Shown here in pieces: positions 2,645 to 54,251 of a DNA stretch of 64,000 nt (within the stretch, counting starts at the first letter, position 1; each line of letters starts with the position of its first letter). The position numbers and the translations under genes are program-made. Under the pieces are notes generated by a model that saw only the letters and a list, made by a program, of their open reading frames with translations, was not told the origin of the DNA and made no database searches. The DNA is taken from sequence record NC_062581.1. One strand, 5' to 3'.

Positions 2645-4066
2645 ATGAAACAATATTTGGCAATGCAAAGGGACATTTTGACCCTGGGTACAGAAAAACA
2701 AGATCGCACTAAAACAGGTACGATCTCTTATCCGGGGATGATGGCACGTTACGACATTAGTGATAATCGTCTAGCTGTAACATCAACCAAAAAACTTCAT
2801 CTGAAAACAGGACAAGTTGAAGAAGACTGGATGTTCTCAGGTGATACACGACTAAAGTTTCTGAAAGATAACAACTGTAACATTTGGGATGAATGGGTAT
2901 TACCTGGTACGGGTACCTATCGTCTACGTACATTAAAAGAAATGCGTCGTGTATATGTGCGTAACCATTTTGGCTGGGATGAACCAGGCTTCTTTAATGC
3001 ACCTTTATCAGAAGAACAAAAGGGCTACTGCAATCTAGTTCATACCGAAATTGATTTTGACATTTACGAAGTGGTACCCACCACATTGTCTAAACCTCGG
3101 CACATGGTACTAGATAAATCAGATCCAAATAAAAATTGGCTTAACTGGATTAATCCTGACGATCCAATGTGGGTTAAGTTCTACACTGGTTTGAATATCT
3201 CCGATCAAGAAGTTGTTGATGGTGAATTGGGTAAAGTGTACGGTGCTATGTTTCGTAGCATTGAAGATACACGCATTGTAAAAGATGCGTCAGCCAAAGA
3301 AACATTGGCCATGAAAAAACGTGGGTTTACCTTTGAAGGTGAACTGGCAGGCAAGCGTTCTGTGTTTACTCGGAACATTGACCAGCTGGCAAATCTACTG
3401 CATGATCTTGAACATAACCCAGATTCACGTCGTTTGATTCTTTGCCCATGGAATCCAGCGTATGTGGATGAGCAAGCCTTACCACCTTGCCATTCATTTA
3501 TTCAATTCTGGACACGTGAAATTCCTGCGGAAGAACGTTACAACATTTACGTGAAACGTTTTGAGCGGGAAAAAGCTGAACTGTTTGACGATATTGCTCG
3601 CCGGGGGCGGGCAGATATCTACACAGTCCATGTACCGTATCCACTAAGTTCTTTCATGCATGTTGAAAACGATGCATTGGTTCGTGATGAATATAAACTA
3701 CATGCCTATTTGGATGAGCTTAATGTTCCTCGTCGTGGTTTGACCTGTATCTTCTACATGCGCTCCAACGATAACTTTTTGGGTGCTCCGTATAACCTGA
3801 CGTTTTATTCGTCGTTGACGCACAAACTTGCTCACCAGTTTAATATGTATGGTGAAGAGCTAGTGCACATGGTCGGTGATGCACACATTTACCTGAACCA
3901 TTTGGATCAAGTAAAAGAACAGCAACTGCGTACTCCGGATGAAGATATGCCACGACTAAAGATCAAATGTCCTGTAGGTACTTCCATTCTGGATATGACC
4001 TTTAATGATCTTGAAGTTGTTGGCTACAATCCACAACCGGCTATTCCTGCGCCCGTAGCAGTTTAA
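2645..4066 (+). CDS. thyA: Thymidylate synthase with large insertions
   Basis: DRTKTGT, NIWDEW, GELGKVYG, DSRRLI, ALPPCH, MRSND..LGAPYN and GDAHIYLNH motifs. Confidence 0.95.
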   Translation: MKQYLAMQRDILTLGTEKQDRTKTGTISYPGMMARYDISDNRLAVTSTKKLHLKTGQVEEDWMFSGDTRLKFLKDNNCNIWDEWVLPGTGTYRLRTLKEMRRVYVRNHFGWDEPGFFNAPLSEEQKGYCNLVHTEIDFDIYEVVPTTLSKPRHMVLDKSDPNKNWLNWINPDDPMWVKFYTGLNISDQEVVDGELGKVYGAMFRSIEDTRIVKDASAKETLAMKKRGFTFEGELAGKRSVFTRNIDQLANLLHDLEHNPDSRRLILCPWNPAYVDEQALPPCHSFIQFWTREIPAEERYNIYVKRFEREKAELFDDIARRGRADIYTVHVPYPLSSFMHVENDALVRDEYKLHAYLDELNVPRRGLTCIFYMRSNDNFLGAPYNLTFYSSLTHKLAHQFNMYGEELVHMVGDAHIYLNHLDQVKEQQLRTPDEDMPRLKIKCPVGTSILDMTFNDLEVVGYNPQPAIPAPVAV

Positions 4067-5915: not shown

Positions 5916-7256
5916 ATGTCTGAAGCAGAAGTTGTACAAAAAGAAATCAAAGCAGGTTTTGGTGTAGTAGAAAAAGATCGTAAACTTGCGCGCATCGTTA
6001 TCATTGACGATGTTGTTCCACACCCTAATGCTGAACGCTTGGAACTTGCTGTAATTGGTGGTTGGCAACTCTGTGTCAAATTGGGCGAATACAAGAAAGG
6101 TGATCGTGCCGTTTATTGCGAGATCGATTCCCTGCTACCATTGTCCAACGTAGAACTCTTTGGTTTCCTGGAAGAACGCCGTTCTGATAACCGTCGGGTT
6201 GATGGTGTTAACTTTCACCGGCTGAAGACTATCAAACTGCGTAAAGAAATTTCACAAGGTCTGTTGGTTCCAGTGCCAGCTAAGTTTAAAGATTCTCCGG
6301 TTGATACTAACCTGACTCTAGAACTGGGTATCTTGAAATACGAACCACGTGCACCAATGGAGCCATCGAACAAAGAAGCTCGCGGTTCTGACTGGTACTC
6401 TCGTTTGATTCGTAAGATCATTGGTAACCTGGATGGTTCACTGATTCCTTGGCCAGCTCAACTGACTAAGTCTGATCAGGACCGAGTACAGAACAAAACT
6501 GTTGCCTTCACCCTGGCTAAAGAAGCCGGTGAAGTATTTGAAGTTACCTACAAGCTTGATGGTAGCTCGATGACTGTGTTCTGCATCAACGATAAAGGTG
6601 TCCGTACTGGTGTGTGTTCTCGTAATTACGAGCTAGGTCTGGGTGAAGGTAATTGGTCGTTCTCTGAACAGCTGCGTCATTGGGTTGGTGCTTTCCTCAT
6701 CCGTAACCGTAAAGTAGTTAGCTTGAAGAAAGTTCCTTTGGAAGAAGGTGGTTTCAAACGTAAACTACATTGGACTGGTATTCACATTCCACAGTGGTTG
6801 AAAGGTAGCATTGCTACTGAGAACAACTTCACTCGTTATGTGAAAGAACATGAAGTTACCAAGGCGCTGCGTGAATACCAAGCGCGTACTGGTGAATTCA
6901 TTACTGTTCAAGGTGAATTGATTGGTCCGGACATTCAGTCTAACTTTGAAGGTGTAGACAAACACGAATACCACGTGTTCTCTGTGTACCGTAATGGTAA
7001 CGAAGAAGTCTTGCCTGAAGAAGCTGAAAAGATTGTTAAAGAACTGGGTCTTACTTACGTTCCAATCTTTGATCGTGCGTTTGTAATCAAACCAGAACAA
7101 GGTGTTAAAGAAATCCTGGAATTGGCTGAAGGTCAACGTGCTTTCAATCCAAAGAAAGGTACTTACCGTGAAGGTCTGGTATTCAAGTCAAAATCTCGAC
7201 TGATGTCCTTCAAAGCCATCAGCAATAGCTACCTTATCAAAAAAGCAGACGAATAA
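5916..7256 (+). CDS. ATP-dependent RNA ligase (Rnl2/DRB0094-like) with N-terminal OB-fold tRNA-binding-like domain
   Basis: N-terminal HPNAERLELAVIGGWQ..VK.GEYKKGD.AVYCEIDS; ligase motifs KLDGSS, GELIGP.IQ, REGLVFK and FKAISNSYL; likely start MSEAE at 5916. Confidence 0.88.
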   Translation: MSEAEVVQKEIKAGFGVVEKDRKLARIVIIDDVVPHPNAERLELAVIGGWQLCVKLGEYKKGDRAVYCEIDSLLPLSNVELFGFLEERRSDNRRVDGVNFHRLKTIKLRKEISQGLLVPVPAKFKDSPVDTNLTLELGILKYEPRAPMEPSNKEARGSDWYSRLIRKIIGNLDGSLIPWPAQLTKSDQDRVQNKTVAFTLAKEAGEVFEVTYKLDGSSMTVFCINDKGVRTGVCSRNYELGLGEGNWSFSEQLRHWVGAFLIRNRKVVSLKKVPLEEGGFKRKLHWTGIHIPQWLKGSIATENNFTRYVKEHEVTKALREYQARTGEFITVQGELIGPDIQSNFEGVDKHEYHVFSVYRNGNEEVLPEEAEKIVKELGLTYVPIFDRAFVIKPEQGVKEILELAEGQRAFNPKKGTYREGLVFKSKSRLMSFKAISNSYLIKKADE

Positions 7257-9680: not shown

Positions 9681-9720
9681 GGCTACCCTTCGGGGTAGCC
9701 TTATGTTTATTTCTTTTTTA
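9681..9720 (+). terminator. Intrinsic terminator
   Basis: GGCTACCC-TTCG-GGGTAGCC followed by TTATG and a T tract. Confidence 0.85.
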
Positions 9721-9738
9721 TTTAAAACGATTTCAAAG

Positions 9739-9747
9739 CTATATTAC
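9739..9747 (+). promoter_or_regulatory. phiKZ-type early promoter (TATATTAC)
   Basis: CTATATTAC just downstream of a terminator, AT-rich upstream; matches the published phiKZ early consensus. Confidence 0.75.
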
Positions 9748-9781
9748 ATTTAGGATATCAACTACATTAAGGAATACAGCC

Positions 9782-12700
9782 ATGTCTAAACAAAAGCAAA
9801 CCCGTAAAGTTCTTGGTGAATTGCGCCTTTTACAACACCGCTTCTGCACTGTCAATCCACAACGGACACGCCGTGAACTGATTGATAGTCTGCAAACGTT
9901 TGTCAGTACCGATGGCATTGACATCATCGATGCCACAACGCGGCAAAAGATCGATCGCGTAACTTTCGACCAGAAGGTAGTGCCTGAGCATTACTATCCG
10001 GTCATCGCACACATTGCGGCGATTACTGCTCCGCAATAAATCCCGTGGCCCTCCGTAATAGGAGGGCATTATAAAAGGAAGTAGACATGTCACTTGCAGT
10101 TGTGTTTTTCTCCACCGTGATTGGTTTGTCTGAAGGCGTCAGCATTCCACCAGAGCCCAATCAAGAAAAGATTGAGTTTCGTGGAAGTAACGCCATGCAA
10201 GCTTGCCGTTCTTTTGAGAACGCTTTTCATACTAAACAACCAACCACGTACGGCATGCGTAAGGTTTCTATTGATACCTACGGCGTCGGGCAAGTACAAC
10301 GTGAAAGCTATTGTGTAACAACTGAACAGGGTTAATAATAATGCGTACACAAGTAGAAATCTGGGAAGATGAACGTCGTAGTTTGGAAATAGCTCTGATC
10401 AGAGCAACGCTCCAGCAGCTGTGGAATCAAGACTACGAACCAGGTCTGCTAACAATGAATGGCGTGGTTCATCTGGTAGAGCATAAAGTGGACACCAGTA
10501 TGGGCAGAAATCAGACAACTGGCCATAAGGAATTCACGCTGGATGTTCTTGAATCTACAAAGTTTAAACTGGATGCACCTCTTTGGACGATCGTATTTGA
10601 CGTCGAGGACAACAAGGTTTCGGAATTGGTTATTGATACCATACTCTGCAAACGTAAAACCATCATCCATGAACTGGGTGAATATGTGTTGCATATCCTC
10701 AGCACATATCATCCCGATGGCCGGAAACTGTTTGAAAATTAAGTGTTGACACAAGGAGAGACTACGGGTAAACTATAGTCTCAATCAAAACGGAAGGGAA
10801 ACATAATGAAGTACGAAGATCTACTGCATCTGTCATCGCAAGTTCGGGTGTCTTATCTGGTAGCTGTCCTCAAAGCAGTTTGTGTCGAGGCGAAGGAATC
10901 GCCAAAGCCCCTAGCAACAGTTATAAATGCAACATTGGCAGTGTTTAGCTTGACTGCCACCGAACACGATGCGTTGAAACAAGAAGCATTAGAACGCCTA
11001 CAAGACGAATAATTGGACTGAGCCTCGCAAGGGGCTCAACTCTCAAGGAAAACAAAATGATTGAAGCACTATTGAACTTTCCATGGAAAATCCAATTGGG
11101 TTTAATATGGATTGTGTTGACTCTATTGGGTGTGTGGCTGGCTAACAACATGCTCAATGATGCATGGCGTAATAAAACCTGGTGTATGTTTATTGGGTGT
11201 TTTAACATCTTTGCCTTGTTGTTGAATCTGTTGTCTGCAACCGTAATGATTGTGGATTATAGCCAAGAACAATATCAAGATGAACTGTTTACTCAGGAAT
11301 TGCAACGTGAGAGTATTCCGTATTGAAGATGTTTACGGGAATGGTATCTACGCTGTTGAAATGGGATATGAAATGTCATTGGCTGCTGGCCTAGACGAAT
11401 ACTTTCCTTTTGAAGGTCATTCTAATCAACCCGTTCCAAGTGAAGATGGTCTTACCCGTGGTGATGAAGCATGGGGGAAATACTACGGGTTTGCTGGTAT
11501 CCCGCAACTGTTAAATTGGATTAACGGTTGTCCTGTAGAAAGGCTGTATGAAAAAGGTGGGCTTGTAATCCAACTCGATGTTAAAAAAGCAGAGTTTGGT
11601 TATAACCAATGTCGGTTTGCTGAAACCGATATCATTTCGCGTAAACCATTGAAGTTGTACGATCTACAGAGGATTCTATAAATGGCGATGTATTCTGGTC
11701 TACGGTTGGACCTTAAGTTGAAATCTGAAACCCCACCACAAATCATCGTGTGGTTGTCTAAGCATGCAATGCATGAAGGTAACATTCCAGAGATCAATAG
11801 TTTCTTTTCTTACGGGGTTACTTACTTTCCAGATTGGAAAGGTGGTTCACTAAAACGTATTGACGAAGGTGATGGTTATTGGCACCTGAAATCGAATGGT
11901 GTAAGTTCTGGTTACGATGACACTAAAATTGCTTTCTTCCTGCATGAAATCCAACCGTGGTTGATTTTAGAAGAAGGACAAATTCTGGCGTCTATTATCT
12001 ACGAAGAACGTGAAGCAGTTGAACGTATCTTCTGGATTGACCCCAAAGACACTTTGGTGCGCCGCCGTCGAGCTACAGTGTATTGTTACGAAGATGATCA
12101 TCCTCGTGATTGGAATGCATTAGAACTAGCTGAACCACTGGGTTTTGAATCTGCAGCAAACCGACCTAATTGGTTGGATGAAGAAATATTCAACTTTGCA
12201 TGCAATGCGGTGGTAAGTCCAGCACAAGAAGAAAAACGTATCCTGGCTAAACAGCATAATGAAAAATATGCAGCAGGCAGCGTAGAAGCAATTCAAGAAG
12301 AACTTAAAGCATTGGAAGGGAAGCAATGAATATTCATTCGTGGCGTGATGGGCGTTTTATTCTGGCAAAGGATTCACTGCTGGCGATGGCTGCTCGATTA
12401 GGTTTTATGTCTATTGATCAGATCAATGAACTGCCCATTGCCAGTGACGTGGGGTTGCACGATGGCTGGTGTGTTGATATCCACGCTAGTAAAGGTATTG
12501 GTGGACGTATTCGCCATACACTTGACATCAACATTTGGAATGACATTGAAGATTGTCAATGGAAGTTTACCATTGACGTGTTGGGTCAGAATCAATGTAA
12601 AAACTGTTACTTTCCAGAAATTGGAAACTTCGGTAAAGATGTAGATACATTGTCAGAAAATGATTTCAATGACATTTGTTATTTGCCGGAAGTCTTTGCA

Positions 12701-48166: not shown

Positions 48167-48889
48167 TTAGGTTATTTGAATTGACCACTCATTGTTTTCC
48201 CAACTGTCTTTTTGTTTTGTTATAAGAGCTTTATGAATTGTAGTGTAATTTATTTTGGTATATTTAGCAGCATCCATAAGTGTTTCAAATGTGTGAGCTT
48301 CGCCTGTAACTTTATTAGCCGCCATTGTAATAAACCATGTTCTCTTTTTACTAGATATCTTAGGCCATGGTTTTATTGACATGTGTCTGAAAGCGTAGTT
48401 GCAATAAGCGTATTGTCCAGCCATGTTACCCCGTAAATGTTTGGCTAGGGTAGGTAATGGTACACCATATTTCTCTGCTGCTCGTCGAATAGATTTCTCT
48501 GTAAATATCTCACCGCTATTAATGTTAAGAATTTGTATTTCTATTGGGATAGGGGTAAGCTTATTATCAACCGCATGAATAACATTACCTGATCCTGTTA
48601 CCCATTCTAAGTTAGTTTTTGTATTGTTTGCTTTATTGCCGTCTTTATGATTAACTTCAAGTTGTTTAAATGGAATATGTTGTAAATGCATTGGTCGTTT
48701 AACATAGGTAATTGCATATATGCGGTGTACTCGATACGCCCTATGTTTCATTCCAGGTGAGGTTAAAACAATATTCATGTATCCTGATTTTGTTTTATGT
48801 TGTTTAAGTATTTTGCATGTTCGGTAATTAAACAATACCCCTTCGGGACTTACTCCGATCCTATTGTCATTTGGAAATGGTTTATACAT
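48167..48889 (-). CDS. NUMOD4-HNH homing endonuclease
   Basis: RIGVSPEG.LFN, YRVHRIYA, EVNHKDGNKANNTKTNLEWVT..GN..HA; C-terminal HTH repeats; free-standing between two tRNA-Leu genes. Confidence 0.9.
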   Translation of the reverse strand: MYKPFPNDNRIGVSPEGVLFNYRTCKILKQHKTKSGYMNIVLTSPGMKHRAYRVHRIYAITYVKRPMHLQHIPFKQLEVNHKDGNKANNTKTNLEWVTGSGNVIHAVDNKLTPIPIEIQILNINSGEIFTEKSIRRAAEKYGVPLPTLAKHLRGNMAGQYAYCNYAFRHMSIKPWPKISSKKRTWFITMAANKVTGEAHTFETLMDAAKYTKINYTTIHKALITKQKDSWENNEWSIQIT

Positions 48890-48930
48890 TTTAAGTCCTG
48901 TCTACTATTACACTATACAATAGGACATAA

Positions 48931-48950
48931 AACCAACCCTAAGGTTGGCT
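48931..48950 (-). terminator. Intrinsic terminator after tRNA-Leu(TAA)
   Basis: AGCCAACC-TTAG-GGTTGGTT followed by TTATG. Confidence 0.8.
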
Positions 48951-48958
48951 ATGTTTTT

Positions 48959-49044
48959 TGGTGCCTGAAGGGGGACTCGAACCCACCAATCCCGAAGGCG
49001 GGAGTGTTTAAGACTCCTATCTATACCAATTCGATCATTCAGGC
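48959..49044 (-). tRNA. tRNA-Leu(TAA)
   Basis: GCCTGAA/TTCAGGC acceptor, GGAGT-CTTAAAC-ACTCC, long variable arm, CCA. Confidence 0.93.
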
Positions 49045-49050
49045 GTATAC

Positions 49051-49089
49051 TTTCTAGAATGGTGTGTCTACCGATTTCACCATCCGGGC
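49051..49089 (-). pseudogene. tRNA-Leu-like 5' half only
   Basis: GCCCGGATGGTGAAATCGGTAGACACA (acceptor 5' strand plus D arm); no anticodon-stem partner, T arm or 3' strand. Confidence 0.65.
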
Positions 49090-49094
49090 TAATT

Positions 49095-49860
49095 TGATCC
49101 AGCATCCAAAACGTACAGGTTTGGTTAACAACAAACACAAGGTCGTTGGTAGATCGGTCGCTGGAAGAACCTTTTCATCCTAGTACATAGCCACAACGAA
49201 CTGCGGTAAACCGCTAGAGTTGTAACCGGCGAGCTAGGTCTATCTACTTACTCGCCTACAGCGCTTCAGGACGATGGAGGGCAAGTAATTGAGAATCGAG
49301 GGTAACCAATTAGACGCTTTGCTAGCTCCGGCTTTCACGGAGTGCCGACTAACCCATTACCATGACCAGTAGGCAGACTGGGTAGCTGGGACACAAGGTC
49401 CAGTTCGGGAATATGGGGTTGCGTGTAAGAAATCAGCCAGGGATCTGAAACATGTTTTCTTACACCAACCAGTGACGGACATCTGATCCGTTGCAGCCGA
49501 GTCTGCCGCCTCTTCGGTATGCGCCTTAGTAACCGGGACTATCCAGTCTTTGGGGTATCATGGGTCGGGCTTTGAGCTTCCCTGTTAACTGACTATTCTA
49601 GTCTTTTGTCAGTCGTCGTAGGGGTTCATTAAAATCTCACACCATGCAGCTCGGTGCCCTAGTCTGAGGATTAATCAGGCATCAGTGTAAGACTTGCCTA
49701 TCCCTTCCGGGCTAGGGCTTCACCGTTCCAATGGGCTCGGTGTATGAGATTGATAGTAACGATTTAACGCTCCTTGGCAGCTTTCCCAATTCACGCAACC
49801 TTTACCGAACGTTAGAGGAAACCTCCTTACCCAACATCCGAACTATCTATCTCATGCTCT
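49095..49860 (-). ncRNA. Large (~770 nt) structured non-coding RNA of unknown class
   Basis: No ORF >=60 aa; GC-richer than flanks; many long stems (10 bp 49423-49432/49456-49465; 8 bp 49372-49379/49500-49507; 7 bp 49633-49639/49745-49751). Confidence 0.7.
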
Positions 49861-49863
49861 TGA

Positions 49864-50538
49864 CTACTCGTGAGTAGTTTCTAAACTGTGTATTACGCAA
49901 ACTGAACCATCGTCTAACGCGGTCTTGGCGTTGTAATCAATTTGATTATAGACACCACCATGAAATTGGAAGATTCGATCACGCCAAGTACTATCCAGCT
50001 TTAAAGCAGGACAATCAGATTTACGACCTTCGCACAGAGCGTTGATTGTTACTGAACCTGCTTTAGTTACGTGGAGAGTAATCTTGAACGGCACACCTAG
50101 TGGTACGTTTTCCAAAACAGTAAAGTTATTGATTACTGGATCGGTAAAGCTACTACGGAAACCAGCCGTAAGTTTTCCTTTATTCCAGAAAACTTTCAAT
50201 GGTGGAGTAGTAGCATTTTTAACGTGTACTTGAGCAACTACCACTTTCTTAGCTGAGTTAACTCGAACTAATGTCATCTCTTGTCGAGACCAGTGATGTG
50301 CGGCACTATCCATAGGCCAGTAGTTTGCTTCTTTCCATTCACACCGCGTACGATGTGTACTTTTACTAGATGCACCTAATGTTGGTGCTGAGAGTTGTAT
50401 CGAACCGTCTTCTAATTGACTGATCACATCCGCACACTTCACCAAGGCCTCTGAACCAATTAATTCCCAAGCAACAGGATTATTGATACTGACCGGTAAG
50501 GGAGTGGCTATTAAGTAATGATTAATGTCAACTAACAT
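49864..50538 (-). CDS. Polysaccharide lyase family 7 (alginate lyase)
   Basis: PL7 motifs RTRCEWKE, VVAQVH and FHGGVYNQ. Confidence 0.85.
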   Translation of the reverse strand: MLVDINHYLIATPLPVSINNPVAWELIGSEALVKCADVISQLEDGSIQLSAPTLGASSKSTHRTRCEWKEANYWPMDSAAHHWSRQEMTLVRVNSAKKVVVAQVHVKNATTPPLKVFWNKGKLTAGFRSSFTDPVINNFTVLENVPLGVPFKITLHVTKAGSVTINALCEGRKSDCPALKLDSTWRDRIFQFHGGVYNQIDYNAKTALDDGSVCVIHSLETTHE

Positions 50539-50561: not shown

Positions 50562-50622
50562 GGAGCGTCCTAGTCTAACTAGACGACAGCTAATGCTGAT
50601 TGGATTTGCACCAATGTACTCC
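50562..50622 (-). ncRNA. Circularly permuted tRNA-like RNA (unit B, degenerate)
   Basis: GGAG-TAC-[ATTGG TGCAAAT CCAAT]-[CAGC ATTA GCTG]-TC-[GTCT...GGAC]-G-CTCC. Confidence 0.55.
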
Positions 50623-50628
50623 GGGTAC

Positions 50629-50697
50629 GAGAGTGTCCTTGGCCACTAGACGAACTACCCTAATGGATAGTAACGGGGTCGAACCGTTGTTTCTCTC
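50629..50697 (-). ncRNA. Circularly permuted tRNA-like RNA (unit A)
   Basis: GAGAG-AAAC-[AACGG TTCGACC CCGTT]-[ACTATCC ATTA GGGTAGT]-TC-[GTCT AGTGGCCAA GGAC]-A-CTCTC; all four stems pair in the permuted register. Confidence 0.8.
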
Positions 50698-50703
50698 TAT
50701 CAC

Positions 50704-50795
50704 TGGAGGAAGAATAGGGATTTGAACCCTAGGGCAGTCCTTAGACCACCAGAGCTTTAGCAAAGCCCCTCGTTAAACCACTCCGACATTCTTCC
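50704..50795 (-). tRNA. tRNA-Ser(GCT)
   Basis: GGAAGAA/TTCTTCC, GGGCT-TTGCTAA-AGCTC, long variable arm, CCA. Confidence 0.93.
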
Positions 50796-50801
50796 TGTAA
50801 T

Positions 50802-50877
50802 TGGCGGGCTATGATGGACTCGAACCACCAACACGCGGCTTTGGAGGCCGCTGTTCTGCCAATTGAACTAATAACCC
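50802..50877 (-). tRNA. tRNA-Trp(CCA)
   Basis: GCGGC-CTCCAAA-GCCGC; canonical 76-nt cloverleaf with CCA. Confidence 0.95.
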
Positions 50878-54080: not shown

Positions 54081-54158
54081 AGCCCTCCTTAGATACCGAA
54101 TCTAAATCTCTCTATCCGTGGTATGGACAGAGCGCTTTACCGATTAAGCTAGGTGGGC
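54081..54158 (-). ncRNA. tRNA-like RNA with 8-bp anticodon stem, no CCA
   Basis: GCCCACC/GGAGGGC, GCTT-AATCGGTA-AAGC, CTCTGTCC-ATACCAC-GGATAGAG, TTAGA-TTCGGTA-TCTAA. Confidence 0.7.
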
Positions 54159-54165
54159 ATTGAAT

Positions 54166-54251
54166 TGGTGGATGAAGGAAGGAATTGAACCTCTAGGAGA
54201 ACCGGCGGGGTTACAGGCCGCTGACAGTAGCCATCTGTCTCTACATCATCC
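54166..54251 (-). tRNA. Non-canonical tRNA-Tyr(GTA)
   Basis: Loop CTGTAAC; 8-bp acceptor with one U-U pair; 5-bp D stem GACAG/CTGTC; A73 and CCA. Confidence 0.75.

Follow-up and report, generated by a model that had tools for sequence, protein, structure and literature searches.

A stretch of the genome of Pseudomonas phage Psa21 that is free of open reading frames (ORFs), at 49045-49863 on the minus strand of the 64,000-nucleotide (nt) stretch of record NC_062581.1 analysed here (the window), is probably the gene for a large non-coding RNA of an uncatalogued family, which would be co-transcribed with tRNAs, processed by tRNA enzymes, and comparable to the particle-forming ROOL and GOLLD RNAs. 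The element lies on the minus strand in one uninterrupted block with tRNA genes and directly abuts tRNA-Leu(UAA). Psa21 is a 305-kb jumbo phage of Tepukevirus; the sequence of the element is identical to MK552327 290305-291123, and the GenBank record has no feature annotated over 49045-49863. The original prediction had placed a densely base-paired RNA at 49095-49860 inside a tRNA operon, a location borne out by the same-strand tRNA-Leu(taa) and tRNA-Ser/Trp genes on its two sides. The natural limits of the stretch are slightly wider than those first proposed, and the conserved core of the RNA runs from ~49093 to ~49855. Position p of the RNA corresponds to window position 49864-p.

The family comprises 11 sequences, namely Psa21 and 10 others, two of them partial, all from one phage clade. 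With blastn against 50,697 phage records, only D6, RVTF4, and Phabio were matched, in short and patchy segments (9-25% of the query at 75-83% identity), and each match lies within an unannotated or dubiously annotated gap at the equivalent site; the RVTF4 and Phabio copies, used as blastn queries, gave no additional phages. Pattern scans made from conserved blocks revealed homologues in seven uncultivated jumbo-phage contigs (L006, L012, L014, L015, and L020, and in partial form L005 and L009; L006 is identical to L007, L008, and L017, and was counted once). From the metagenome scan came a single new member and a duplicate contig, while its third hit, L016, arose by chance; L013 was likewise rejected as a chance hit. 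No copy was found in two pattern scans that covered one genome for each of 185,579 species of bacteria and archaea, and a search for related loci via a neighbouring 235-amino-acid (aa) protein returned Psa21 alone. Within the searches made, the family appears limited to the Phabio/Psa21 group of nucleus-forming Pseudomonas jumbo phages; homologues of both ChmA and ChmB have been reported for Phabio, and a ChmB homologue for Psa21 (PMC10643120).

Homologue lengths range from ~660 to 950 nt, the Psa21 copy being ~0.8 kb. Wherever flanks are available, the RNA shares the strand of the tRNAs, follows tRNA-Trp, and precedes tRNA-Leu(taa) by 0-8 nt, except that in Phabio tRNA-Trp was not found upstream of the RNA. 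In D6 and RVTF4, tRNA-Ser(gct) is located between tRNA-Trp and the RNA. An ORF of 224 aa is present in Psa21, L014 (6397-7071), L015 (6284-6958), L009, and L020, and is absent from D6, RVTF4, L006, and L012; because only some members carry it, this ORF is an optional neighbour outside the RNA element. Two small CDSs (coding sequences) of hypothetical proteins in Phabio, PHABIO_450 and PHABIO_451 (L004:3142-3372 and 3496-3672), overlap its RNA homologue and are probably spurious calls.

Coding capacity is lacking throughout the stretch. As originally claimed, no ORF of at least 60 aa lies inside 49095-49860, where the longest ORFs are 48, 41, 39, and 32 aa; a mechanically listed 76-aa ORF (48908-49138) only clips the 3′ edge of the RNA and crosses the tRNA gene. 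The higher G+C content noted at the outset is also real, at 0.51-0.52 over 49150-49749 vs 0.34-0.37 downstream and 0.41-0.43 upstream. Pairwise comparison of members revealed no conserved frame, no three-base periodicity, and no preference for in-frame insertions or deletions (indels): mismatches are spread evenly over the three codon positions (e.g., 86/78/82 for Psa21 vs L015), only 1-3 of the 12-25 indels per member pair are divisible by three, and the longest stop-free stretches (62-115 aa) are unshared between members. The even codon positions and frame-breaking indels, together with the compensatory base pairs described below, indicate selection on an RNA fold and not on a protein, and the decayed protein gene that had been named as the outcome contrary to an RNA left no sign.

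Single-sequence folding is weak evidence by itself (see below), and the decisive support for the fold comes from the homologues. RNAalifold on the eight full-length members predicts 78 consensus pairs, 32 of which show, in at least one sequence, changes of both partners that preserve pairing. When all column pairs of a 10-sequence alignment were scanned for stems of at least four pairs, 16 stems with at least two doubly compensated pairs were found, whereas 20 column-permuted alignments had at most 1 and on average 0.5. For the 40 predicted pairs of the well-aligned central domain, 95.9% of the alignment cells are standard pairs vs 27-48% with the partners slid by 1-3 columns, and the covariation score is 0.34 vs at most 0.09 for the slid partners. 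G-U combinations occupy 36 and A-C combinations 4 of 315 cells; this asymmetry, together with the orientation of the tRNAs, identifies the minus strand as the RNA strand, in line with the strand first favoured. The strongest evidence is provided by individual helices with several independent pair types, such as the hairpins at 49587-49614, in which one position has four pair types, and at 49532-49547. The proposal of a structured RNA is thus sustained by covariation among the homologues collected.

The fold predicted from these alignments consists of a 5′ module, a central domain, and a pseudoknotted 3′ domain, with a hypervariable linker between the central and 3′ domains. Its parts in Psa21 are as follows.

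49744-49855, minus strand: 5′ module, ~110 nt (RNAalifold on nine copies, 21 pairs)
49696-49717, minus strand: hairpin with a GGAA tetraloop, CCC-GGAA-GGG (sequence and homologue alignment)
49522-49681, minus strand: central domain, closed by UGCCU/AGGCG, with 40 predicted pairs, 12 of them with both-sided changes
49587-49614, minus strand: hairpin GACUGAC/GUCAGUU of the central domain, covarying
49532-49547, minus strand: hairpin ACUGG/CCGGU of the central domain, covarying
49599-49603, minus strand: GACUA loop of the 49587-49614 hairpin, side 1 of a predicted kissing contact
49537-49541, minus strand: UAGUC loop of the 49532-49547 hairpin, side 2 of the predicted kissing contact
49497-49517, minus strand: hairpin CCGA...UCGG, changed to CCAC/GUGG in RVTF4 and L009
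49475-49491, minus strand: hairpin ACGGA...UCCGU, almost invariant
49299-49471, minus strand: hypervariable linker, differing in length and sequence in every lineage
49093-49298, minus strand: 3′ domain, the most conserved part, with invariant blocks and compensatory changes in each helix
49280-49286 with 49250-49256, minus strand: hairpin ACUUGCC/GGCGAGU, changed to ACUUACC/GGUGAGU in D6, RVTF4, and others
49242-49247 with 49149-49154, minus strand: pseudoknot GUAGAU/AUCUAC, with six of six pairs in all 10 covering sequences
49234-49238 with 49179-49183, minus strand: helix CCUAG/CUAGG of the 3′ domain, with compensatory changes
49160-49165 with 49098-49103, minus strand: helix UCCAGC/GCUGGA of the 3′ domain
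49106-49124, minus strand: terminal hairpin of the 3′ domain, freely covarying

The 5′ module is closed by a helix of AUGAGAU.GAUAG with CUAUC.AUCUCAU, which changes sequence and stays complementary in the aligned sequences of D6, L006, L012, L015, and the first L014 copy. It contains a second branched stem and an internal hairpin, to which the conserved GGAUGUUGGG block contributes the 5′ strand and in which A-U/C-G and A-U/G-C swaps occur (GGAUG...CUG stem). In L014, the 5′ module is doubled in tandem (6151-6396, minus strand), with a Psa21-type and a D6-type copy, which indicates that the 5′ module is a duplicable and exchangeable unit. The stem of the GGAA hairpin varies yet remains complementary, and its loop is GGAA, GAAA, or longer (judged by eye from aligned sequences, untabulated). 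The central domain includes a GGGC..GAGCU/AGCUC..GCCC stem in addition to its two covarying hairpins, and the loops of these hairpins form the putative kissing contact, which is GACUA/UAGUC in six sequences and GAUCA/UGAUC in three (RVTF4, L012, and L009), two adjacent pairs being swapped.

The linker ranges from ~25 nt (L012) to ~330 nt (L014), with indels of 24-95 nt between close relatives. Within the 3′ domain, the loop of the ACUUGCC/GGCGAGU hairpin is 23 nt long and partly invariant, with CUCCAUC and CUGAAGC conserved, and a further conserved block, GGAUGAAAAG, lies in the same domain. The pseudoknot is AUAGAU/AUCUAU in RVTF4, a single G-C to A-U swap. Searches with a covariance model of the 3′ domain gave a single match in each phage (103-205 bits) and no other in the 64-kb window; as the model is built on a 22-pair RNAalifold structure and an imperfect MAFFT alignment, it was used just for counting copies and not for covariation. 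A long-range helix of GAUGUUGGGUAAGUG with UACUUGCCCUCCAUC, proposed by RNAalifold from the full alignment, was rejected because both blocks lie in covarying local hairpins and L009 and L012 break the register.

All six helix pairs listed in the original prediction, as well as its CCC-GGAA-GGG hairpin, are found at their places in Psa21, and as features of the family about half of them are unconserved. ACTGAC/GTCAGT is conserved among the homologues with many compensatory changes, and the GGAA stem also holds. GTGTAAGAAA/TTTCTTACAC, CTCCG/CGGAG, and the partner of GGCAGACT belong to the hypervariable stretch and are specific to Psa21; the linker harbours three of the originally listed helices in total, including the 10-bp GUGUAAGAAA/UUUCUUACAC hairpin and CUCCG/CGGAG. 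GGCGAG/CTCGCC competes with the covariation-backed ACUUGCC/GGCGAGU and CCUAG/CUAGG helices, as does AATCTCA/TGAGATT with the helix that closes the 5′ module; both pairings are probably unformed or specific to Psa21.

Known RNA families were sought with Rfam 15 (4227 families), at gathering thresholds and at permissive E-values. At gathering thresholds, only tRNAs were found in the window. At E≤10 with permissive filters, nothing relevant was found in the Psa21 region, and the scan of RVTF4 alone gave no GOLLD or ROOL; at E≤5, scans of six homologous loci gave no GOLLD, ROOL, OLE, group I intron, RNase P, or tmRNA. GOLLD, ROOL, introns, RNase P, and tmRNA are therefore excluded at that sensitivity, which agrees with the initial view that the RNA was assignable to neither GOLLD nor ROOL. 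No tmRNA was found by either Rfam or ARAGORN, no RNase P was matched by Rfam, and the tRNA model at E≤10 has no match inside 49095-49860. No group II intron domain V/VI was matched, and flanking exons are absent because the flanks are complete tRNAs; RVTF4 has two weak group-II-D1D4-4 matches, of 16.6 and 13.9 bits where the threshold is 49. Group I introns are likewise unmatched in Rfam, and the element sits between genes and not inside one. The literature searched contained no description of this RNA, or of any large non-coding RNA in Psa21, Phabio, D6, or chimalliviruses, and the RNA is a candidate for a new family of a known kind, the large structured phage RNAs of tRNA clusters.

Similarity to ribosomal RNA is restricted to the linker of some members. 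The linker of RVTF4 has a local 57-nt match to large-subunit (LSU) rRNA (25.4 bits, E 1e-3, model positions 325-381), which consists of a hairpin with a UGGAAU loop followed by GAAGGUGAYAGYCCYGUA (L003:3264-3319); similar pieces are found at equivalent places in D6, Phabio, L014, L015, L009, and L020. Aligned to nt 298-343 of Escherichia coli 23S rRNA, the piece has a Smith-Waterman score of 35 vs at most 28 for shuffles. Since it is absent from Psa21, L006, and L012, the LSU-like piece is an optional insert in a dispensable linker; it may mimic a protein-binding site or represent a shared structural module. A related motif, GGUGA.AGYCC, is seen at an earlier place in the RNA and also in the group-II-D1D4-4 consensus. 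Apart from the LSU-like element, comparison with the E. coli rRNA operon by blastn and Smith-Waterman alignment remained at the level of shuffles. Other resemblances to 23S rRNA, namely the GAC-like CAGGAUGUUGG, UACCCCAAA...AAGGCGC, and GGCUGCAAC, were rejected as no better than chance, an 11-mer identity being expected by chance ~0.5 times per comparison.

In Psa21, all genes adjoining the RNA lie on the minus strand, and the elements of the locus are as follows.

50802-50877, minus strand: tRNA-Trp, upstream of the RNA (ARAGORN and Rfam tRNA model)
50704-50795, minus strand: tRNA-Ser(gct), upstream of the RNA (ARAGORN and Rfam tRNA model)
49864-50538, minus strand: 224-aa ORF, annotated as polysaccharide lyase family 7, directly upstream of the RNA
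49045-49863, minus strand: entire putative RNA gene, free of ORFs, between the upstream ORF's stop codon and the start of tRNA-Leu(UAA)
49064-49089, minus strand: tRNA-Leu remnant with acceptor and D arm only, the first 26 nt of the original gene
48959-49044, minus strand: tRNA-Leu(UAA) (taa), abutting the RNA (ARAGORN and Rfam tRNA model)
48933-48948, minus strand: G+C-rich hairpin followed by UUUUAU (hairpin listed by a terminator scan, U-run read from the sequence)

The 224-aa ORF matches phrog_31475, a family of unknown function, with E 1e-94. The hairpin and UUUUAU after tRNA-Leu(UAA) are likely to mark the end of the transcription unit, and further downstream an HNH endonuclease gene and a second tRNA-Leu follow on the minus strand. 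Annotation of the neighbourhood also includes RtcB and a radical-SAM enzyme labelled RlmN. RVTF4 and L015 have an intact tRNA-Leu(taa), to whose 5′ part the remnant at 49064-49089 aligns, and the same remnant is present in D6. A complete and different tRNA-Leu(taa) starts 19 nt past the remnant, followed by the terminator-like hairpin and the HNH endonuclease gene (48167-49089, minus strand); this arrangement is common to Psa21 and D6 (also L002:1857-2780). An HNH cassette appears to have displaced most of the resident tRNA-Leu gene and to have brought its own copy. The RNA stayed intact in both phages through this truncation and replacement, and in Psa21 the remnant probably forms the 3′ tail of the RNA.

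Elsewhere in the tRNA genes of these phages, several atypical sequences were observed. ARAGORN reports a tRNA-Gly with the unusual anticodon ACC at 54081-54158, which is unreported by the Rfam tRNA model and unannotated in GenBank, and adjoining it at 54170-54251 is a weak tRNA-Sec-like match (22.8 bits); these two may be degenerate or atypical tRNA genes. The gap between tRNA-Ser and the 224-aa ORF (50590-50660, minus strand) contains D-arm-like and T-arm-like sequences (e.g., GGUGCAAAUCCAAUC) in which neither ARAGORN nor Rfam recognises a tRNA, and may be another tRNA remnant. In L015, ARAGORN reports tRNA-SeC(tca) within the tRNA cluster (9711-9787; 40.9 bits with the Rfam tRNA model), which may be an opal-suppressor-like tRNA in a jumbo phage.

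From this arrangement a processing scheme can be proposed that, taken as a whole, is moderately probable. The RNA would be transcribed within a tRNA precursor and acquire its 3′ end when RNase P cuts at the 5′ end of the abutting tRNA-Leu(UAA). The 5′ end would result from 3′ processing of the upstream tRNA-Trp/Ser or, in Psa21, of the intervening mRNA, and the transcription unit would terminate at the hairpin after tRNA-Leu. Phage T4 offers a precedent for this route, as its tRNA cluster encodes stable non-tRNA RNAs (species 1 and 2, also RNA C and D) that tRNA-processing enzymes release from a shared precursor; the T4 species are only ~120-140 nt long and simple in structure, and homology is not expected. 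More tentatively, and at distinctly less than even probability, the released RNA may, like ROOL and GOLLD, fold by itself into a stable particle that acts in trans, possibly self-assembling via the covarying loop-loop contact; the variable linker would then be a spacer that the particle tolerates. On such an account, the RNA would be neither a cis-regulator, nor an intron, nor a tRNA-processing ribozyme.

The assembly of GOLLD is a 14-mer RNA-only nanocage. GOLLD and ROOL are large RNAs of phages and prophages, often located beside tRNAs and provided with a variable linker, and one of their tertiary contacts predicted from covariation proved to be an intermolecular kissing loop (PMC5737381; bioRxiv 10.1101/2024.12.08.627333). 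Like ROOL, the Psa21-type RNA is large, structured, and near tRNA islands of a phage, possibly with co-transcription (PMC5737381). ROOL has multistem junctions, pseudoknots, and a non-conserved internal linker; the 11 sequences here support one pseudoknot and one loop-loop contact, short of a complete fold. The covarying loop-loop contact of ROOL is the quaternary kissing loop of its nanocage. Unlike ROOL, the Psa21-type RNA has no match to the Rfam ROOL model, is longer than the ROOL average of 581 nt, and contains long invariant blocks, highly conserved nucleotides being few in ROOL. The range of ROOL covers several bacterial phyla; the Psa21-type RNA is seen in one clade of lytic Pseudomonas jumbo phages and in none of the bacterial genomes scanned.

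The likeness to GOLLD lies in size (~800 nt, GOLLD often exceeding 800), phage or prophage origin, proximity to tRNA genes, and a universally conserved 3′ region set against a less conserved 5′ region and linker, which is a likeness of context and not homology. Unlike GOLLD, the Psa21-type RNA does not match the Rfam GOLLD model and has no tRNA embedded in the linker of any member, and the hosts differ, with Lactobacillales and aquatic metagenomes for GOLLD and Pseudomonas jumbo phages here. OLE is similarly large (~600 nt) and ornate, with long invariant stretches that are protein-binding sites (bioRxiv 10.1101/2024.12.08.627333). In contrast to the present RNA, OLE is chromosomal in Bacillota, has dedicated oap genes, and is not located beside tRNAs, and no Rfam OLE match was found here.

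Several observations weigh against the proposed large, tRNA-processed RNA. Single-sequence folding gives z = -2.2 for the minus strand and -2.4 for the plus strand (20 shuffles), so that the folding energy is just ~2 standard deviations below the shuffles and equal on both strands. The 11 sequences come from one clade with about nine distinct lineages, and their relatedness inflates the covariation counts, an effect that neither the permutation nor the slid-partner control removes. No clearly covarying helix joins the 5′ module, the central domain, and the 3′ domain, and the sole inter-domain candidate, CUGA with UYAG, is weak and fails in Psa21, so the three parts could be separate RNAs. As the most conserved blocks (CUCCAUC, CUGAAGC, and GGAUGAAAAG) are invariant, their contacts are not revealed by covariation; conserved unpaired blocks compared with phage tRNAs and the 3′ end of 16S rRNA gave just runs of 5-9 nt (G-U allowed), judged unremarkable without a shuffle control. 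The 5′ end is uncertain, because two small 5′ hairpins of other members are missing from Psa21, L014, L015, and L020, in which the 224-aa ORF directly abuts the RNA; L009 has both the ORF and the two hairpins. A sigma-70 promoter scan was uninformative, as the promoters of these phages are outside its coverage, and for every member the transcript, its ends, and its stability are deduced from genomic sequence. The suggestion of a possible new class made in the original prediction is accordingly upheld in that no Rfam family matches and the homologues covary, and remains tempered by a sample of just 11 sequences from one clade and by a transcript that is deduced.

Among other explanations, a decayed protein-coding gene or a non-functional spacer that folds merely through G+C richness is scarcely credible and is largely refuted: although the region is rich in mobile HNH genes and in gene presence/absence polymorphism, the folding z-score is weak, and small CDSs were called there by the Phabio annotators, the stretch is kept at one site in 11 diverged phages and combines hypervariable segments with invariant blocks of 10-16 nt, and the absent codon periodicity, the frame-breaking indels, compensatory changes far above controls, and a G-U/A-C asymmetry that signifies selection at the RNA level are contrary to it. 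Very improbable, too, is an origin from a mobile or cellular RNA of which only a remnant is left, be it a group I or group II intron without an ORF, a fragment of rRNA, or a degenerate tRNA array. The LSU rRNA match of RVTF4 (25.4 bits) with its 23S Smith-Waterman score of 35 vs at most 28, the group-II-D1D4-4 matches (16.6 and 13.9 bits), and the true tRNA half at 49064-49089 would fit such an origin; yet the LSU-like piece is missing from Psa21, L006, and L012, other rRNA similarity is at shuffle level, group II domain V/VI, group I, RNase P, and tmRNA are unmatched, exons are absent, and no tRNA-model match at E≤10 falls inside 49095-49860. A highly divergent member of GOLLD or ROOL, in place of a new family, is to be expected with similarly low probability: the size, phage origin, tRNA adjacency, variable linker, conserved 3′ part, and covarying loop-loop contact all fit, whereas Rfam 15 gives no match for Psa21, RVTF4, or the six homologous loci, and, since GOLLD and ROOL are mutually unrelated in sequence and fold, a shared context is not evidence of homology.

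The remaining alternatives accept the conserved helices and differ on the unit and its role. Two or three smaller RNAs, or a platform acting in cis to process or stabilise tRNA-Leu or the upstream mRNA, would account for the lack of a covariation-backed helix across the three parts, for the independence of the 5′ module (duplicated in L014, with two types), and for the RNA always abutting tRNA-Leu(UAA); against this quite unlikely reading, all parts occur in the same order in every member with no intervening tRNA, ORF, or terminator, the original tRNA-Leu was lost and replaced in Psa21 and D6 while the RNA remained intact, and an RNA of 0.7-0.95 kb with pseudoknots far exceeds any known tRNA leader. 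A stronger contender, though still a minority possibility, is a structured RNA whose role is to bind proteins, as a scaffold or decoy, instead of forming a particle of RNA alone; among the conceivable targets that it might sequester are ribosomal or RNA-processing proteins of the host and tRNA-attacking defence nucleases. Invariant blocks of 7-16 nt that have no detectable partner (CUCCAUC, CUGAAGC, and GGAUGAAAAG) are as expected for contacts with a protein or ligand, and the protein-binding invariant stretches of OLE are a precedent; an element like 23S nt 298-343 is present in many members, and the neighbourhood encodes RNA repair and modification functions (RtcB and the RlmN-annotated radical-SAM enzyme). 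However, the rRNA-like element is not universal, and no partner gene is consistently adjacent, the neighbours being tRNAs and the optional ORF. A scaffold role concerns function only and is compatible with all of the evidence for the fold. The RNA might even represent a third, independently evolved class of large phage RNA with RNA-only quaternary assembly, in which the GACUA/UAGUC contact is intermolecular; this is unlikely. Such an RNA would be made in the phage nucleus alongside the phage tRNAs and could package, protect, or escort them.

Structured RNAs of bacteria and phages that exceed ~500 nt are very rare, comprising rRNAs, group II introns, RNase P, GOLLD, ROOL, OLE, and raiA, and each known large RNA has revealed unusual biochemistry; GOLLD and ROOL were recently shown to be RNA nanocages. 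Even as a clade-specific accessory element, the large RNA proposed here corrects the annotation of four phage genomes. Four members, namely Phabio (whose host is P. fluorescens SBW25), D6, RVTF4, and Psa21, are lytic phages in culture on laboratory Pseudomonas hosts, and knock-outs and infection phenotypes are therefore directly testable. The occurrence of the RNA in nucleus-forming phages raises the question of where transcripts of the tRNA operon are processed and how they exit the phage nucleus. If the RNA is a third unrelated family, it would demonstrate that large RNAs have evolved repeatedly in the tRNA-cluster niche of phages and would provide a far more tractable system, and if the unlikely reading of RNA-only assembly holds, the family would be the first of its kind among lytic, nucleus-forming jumbo phages that infect a Gram-negative host.

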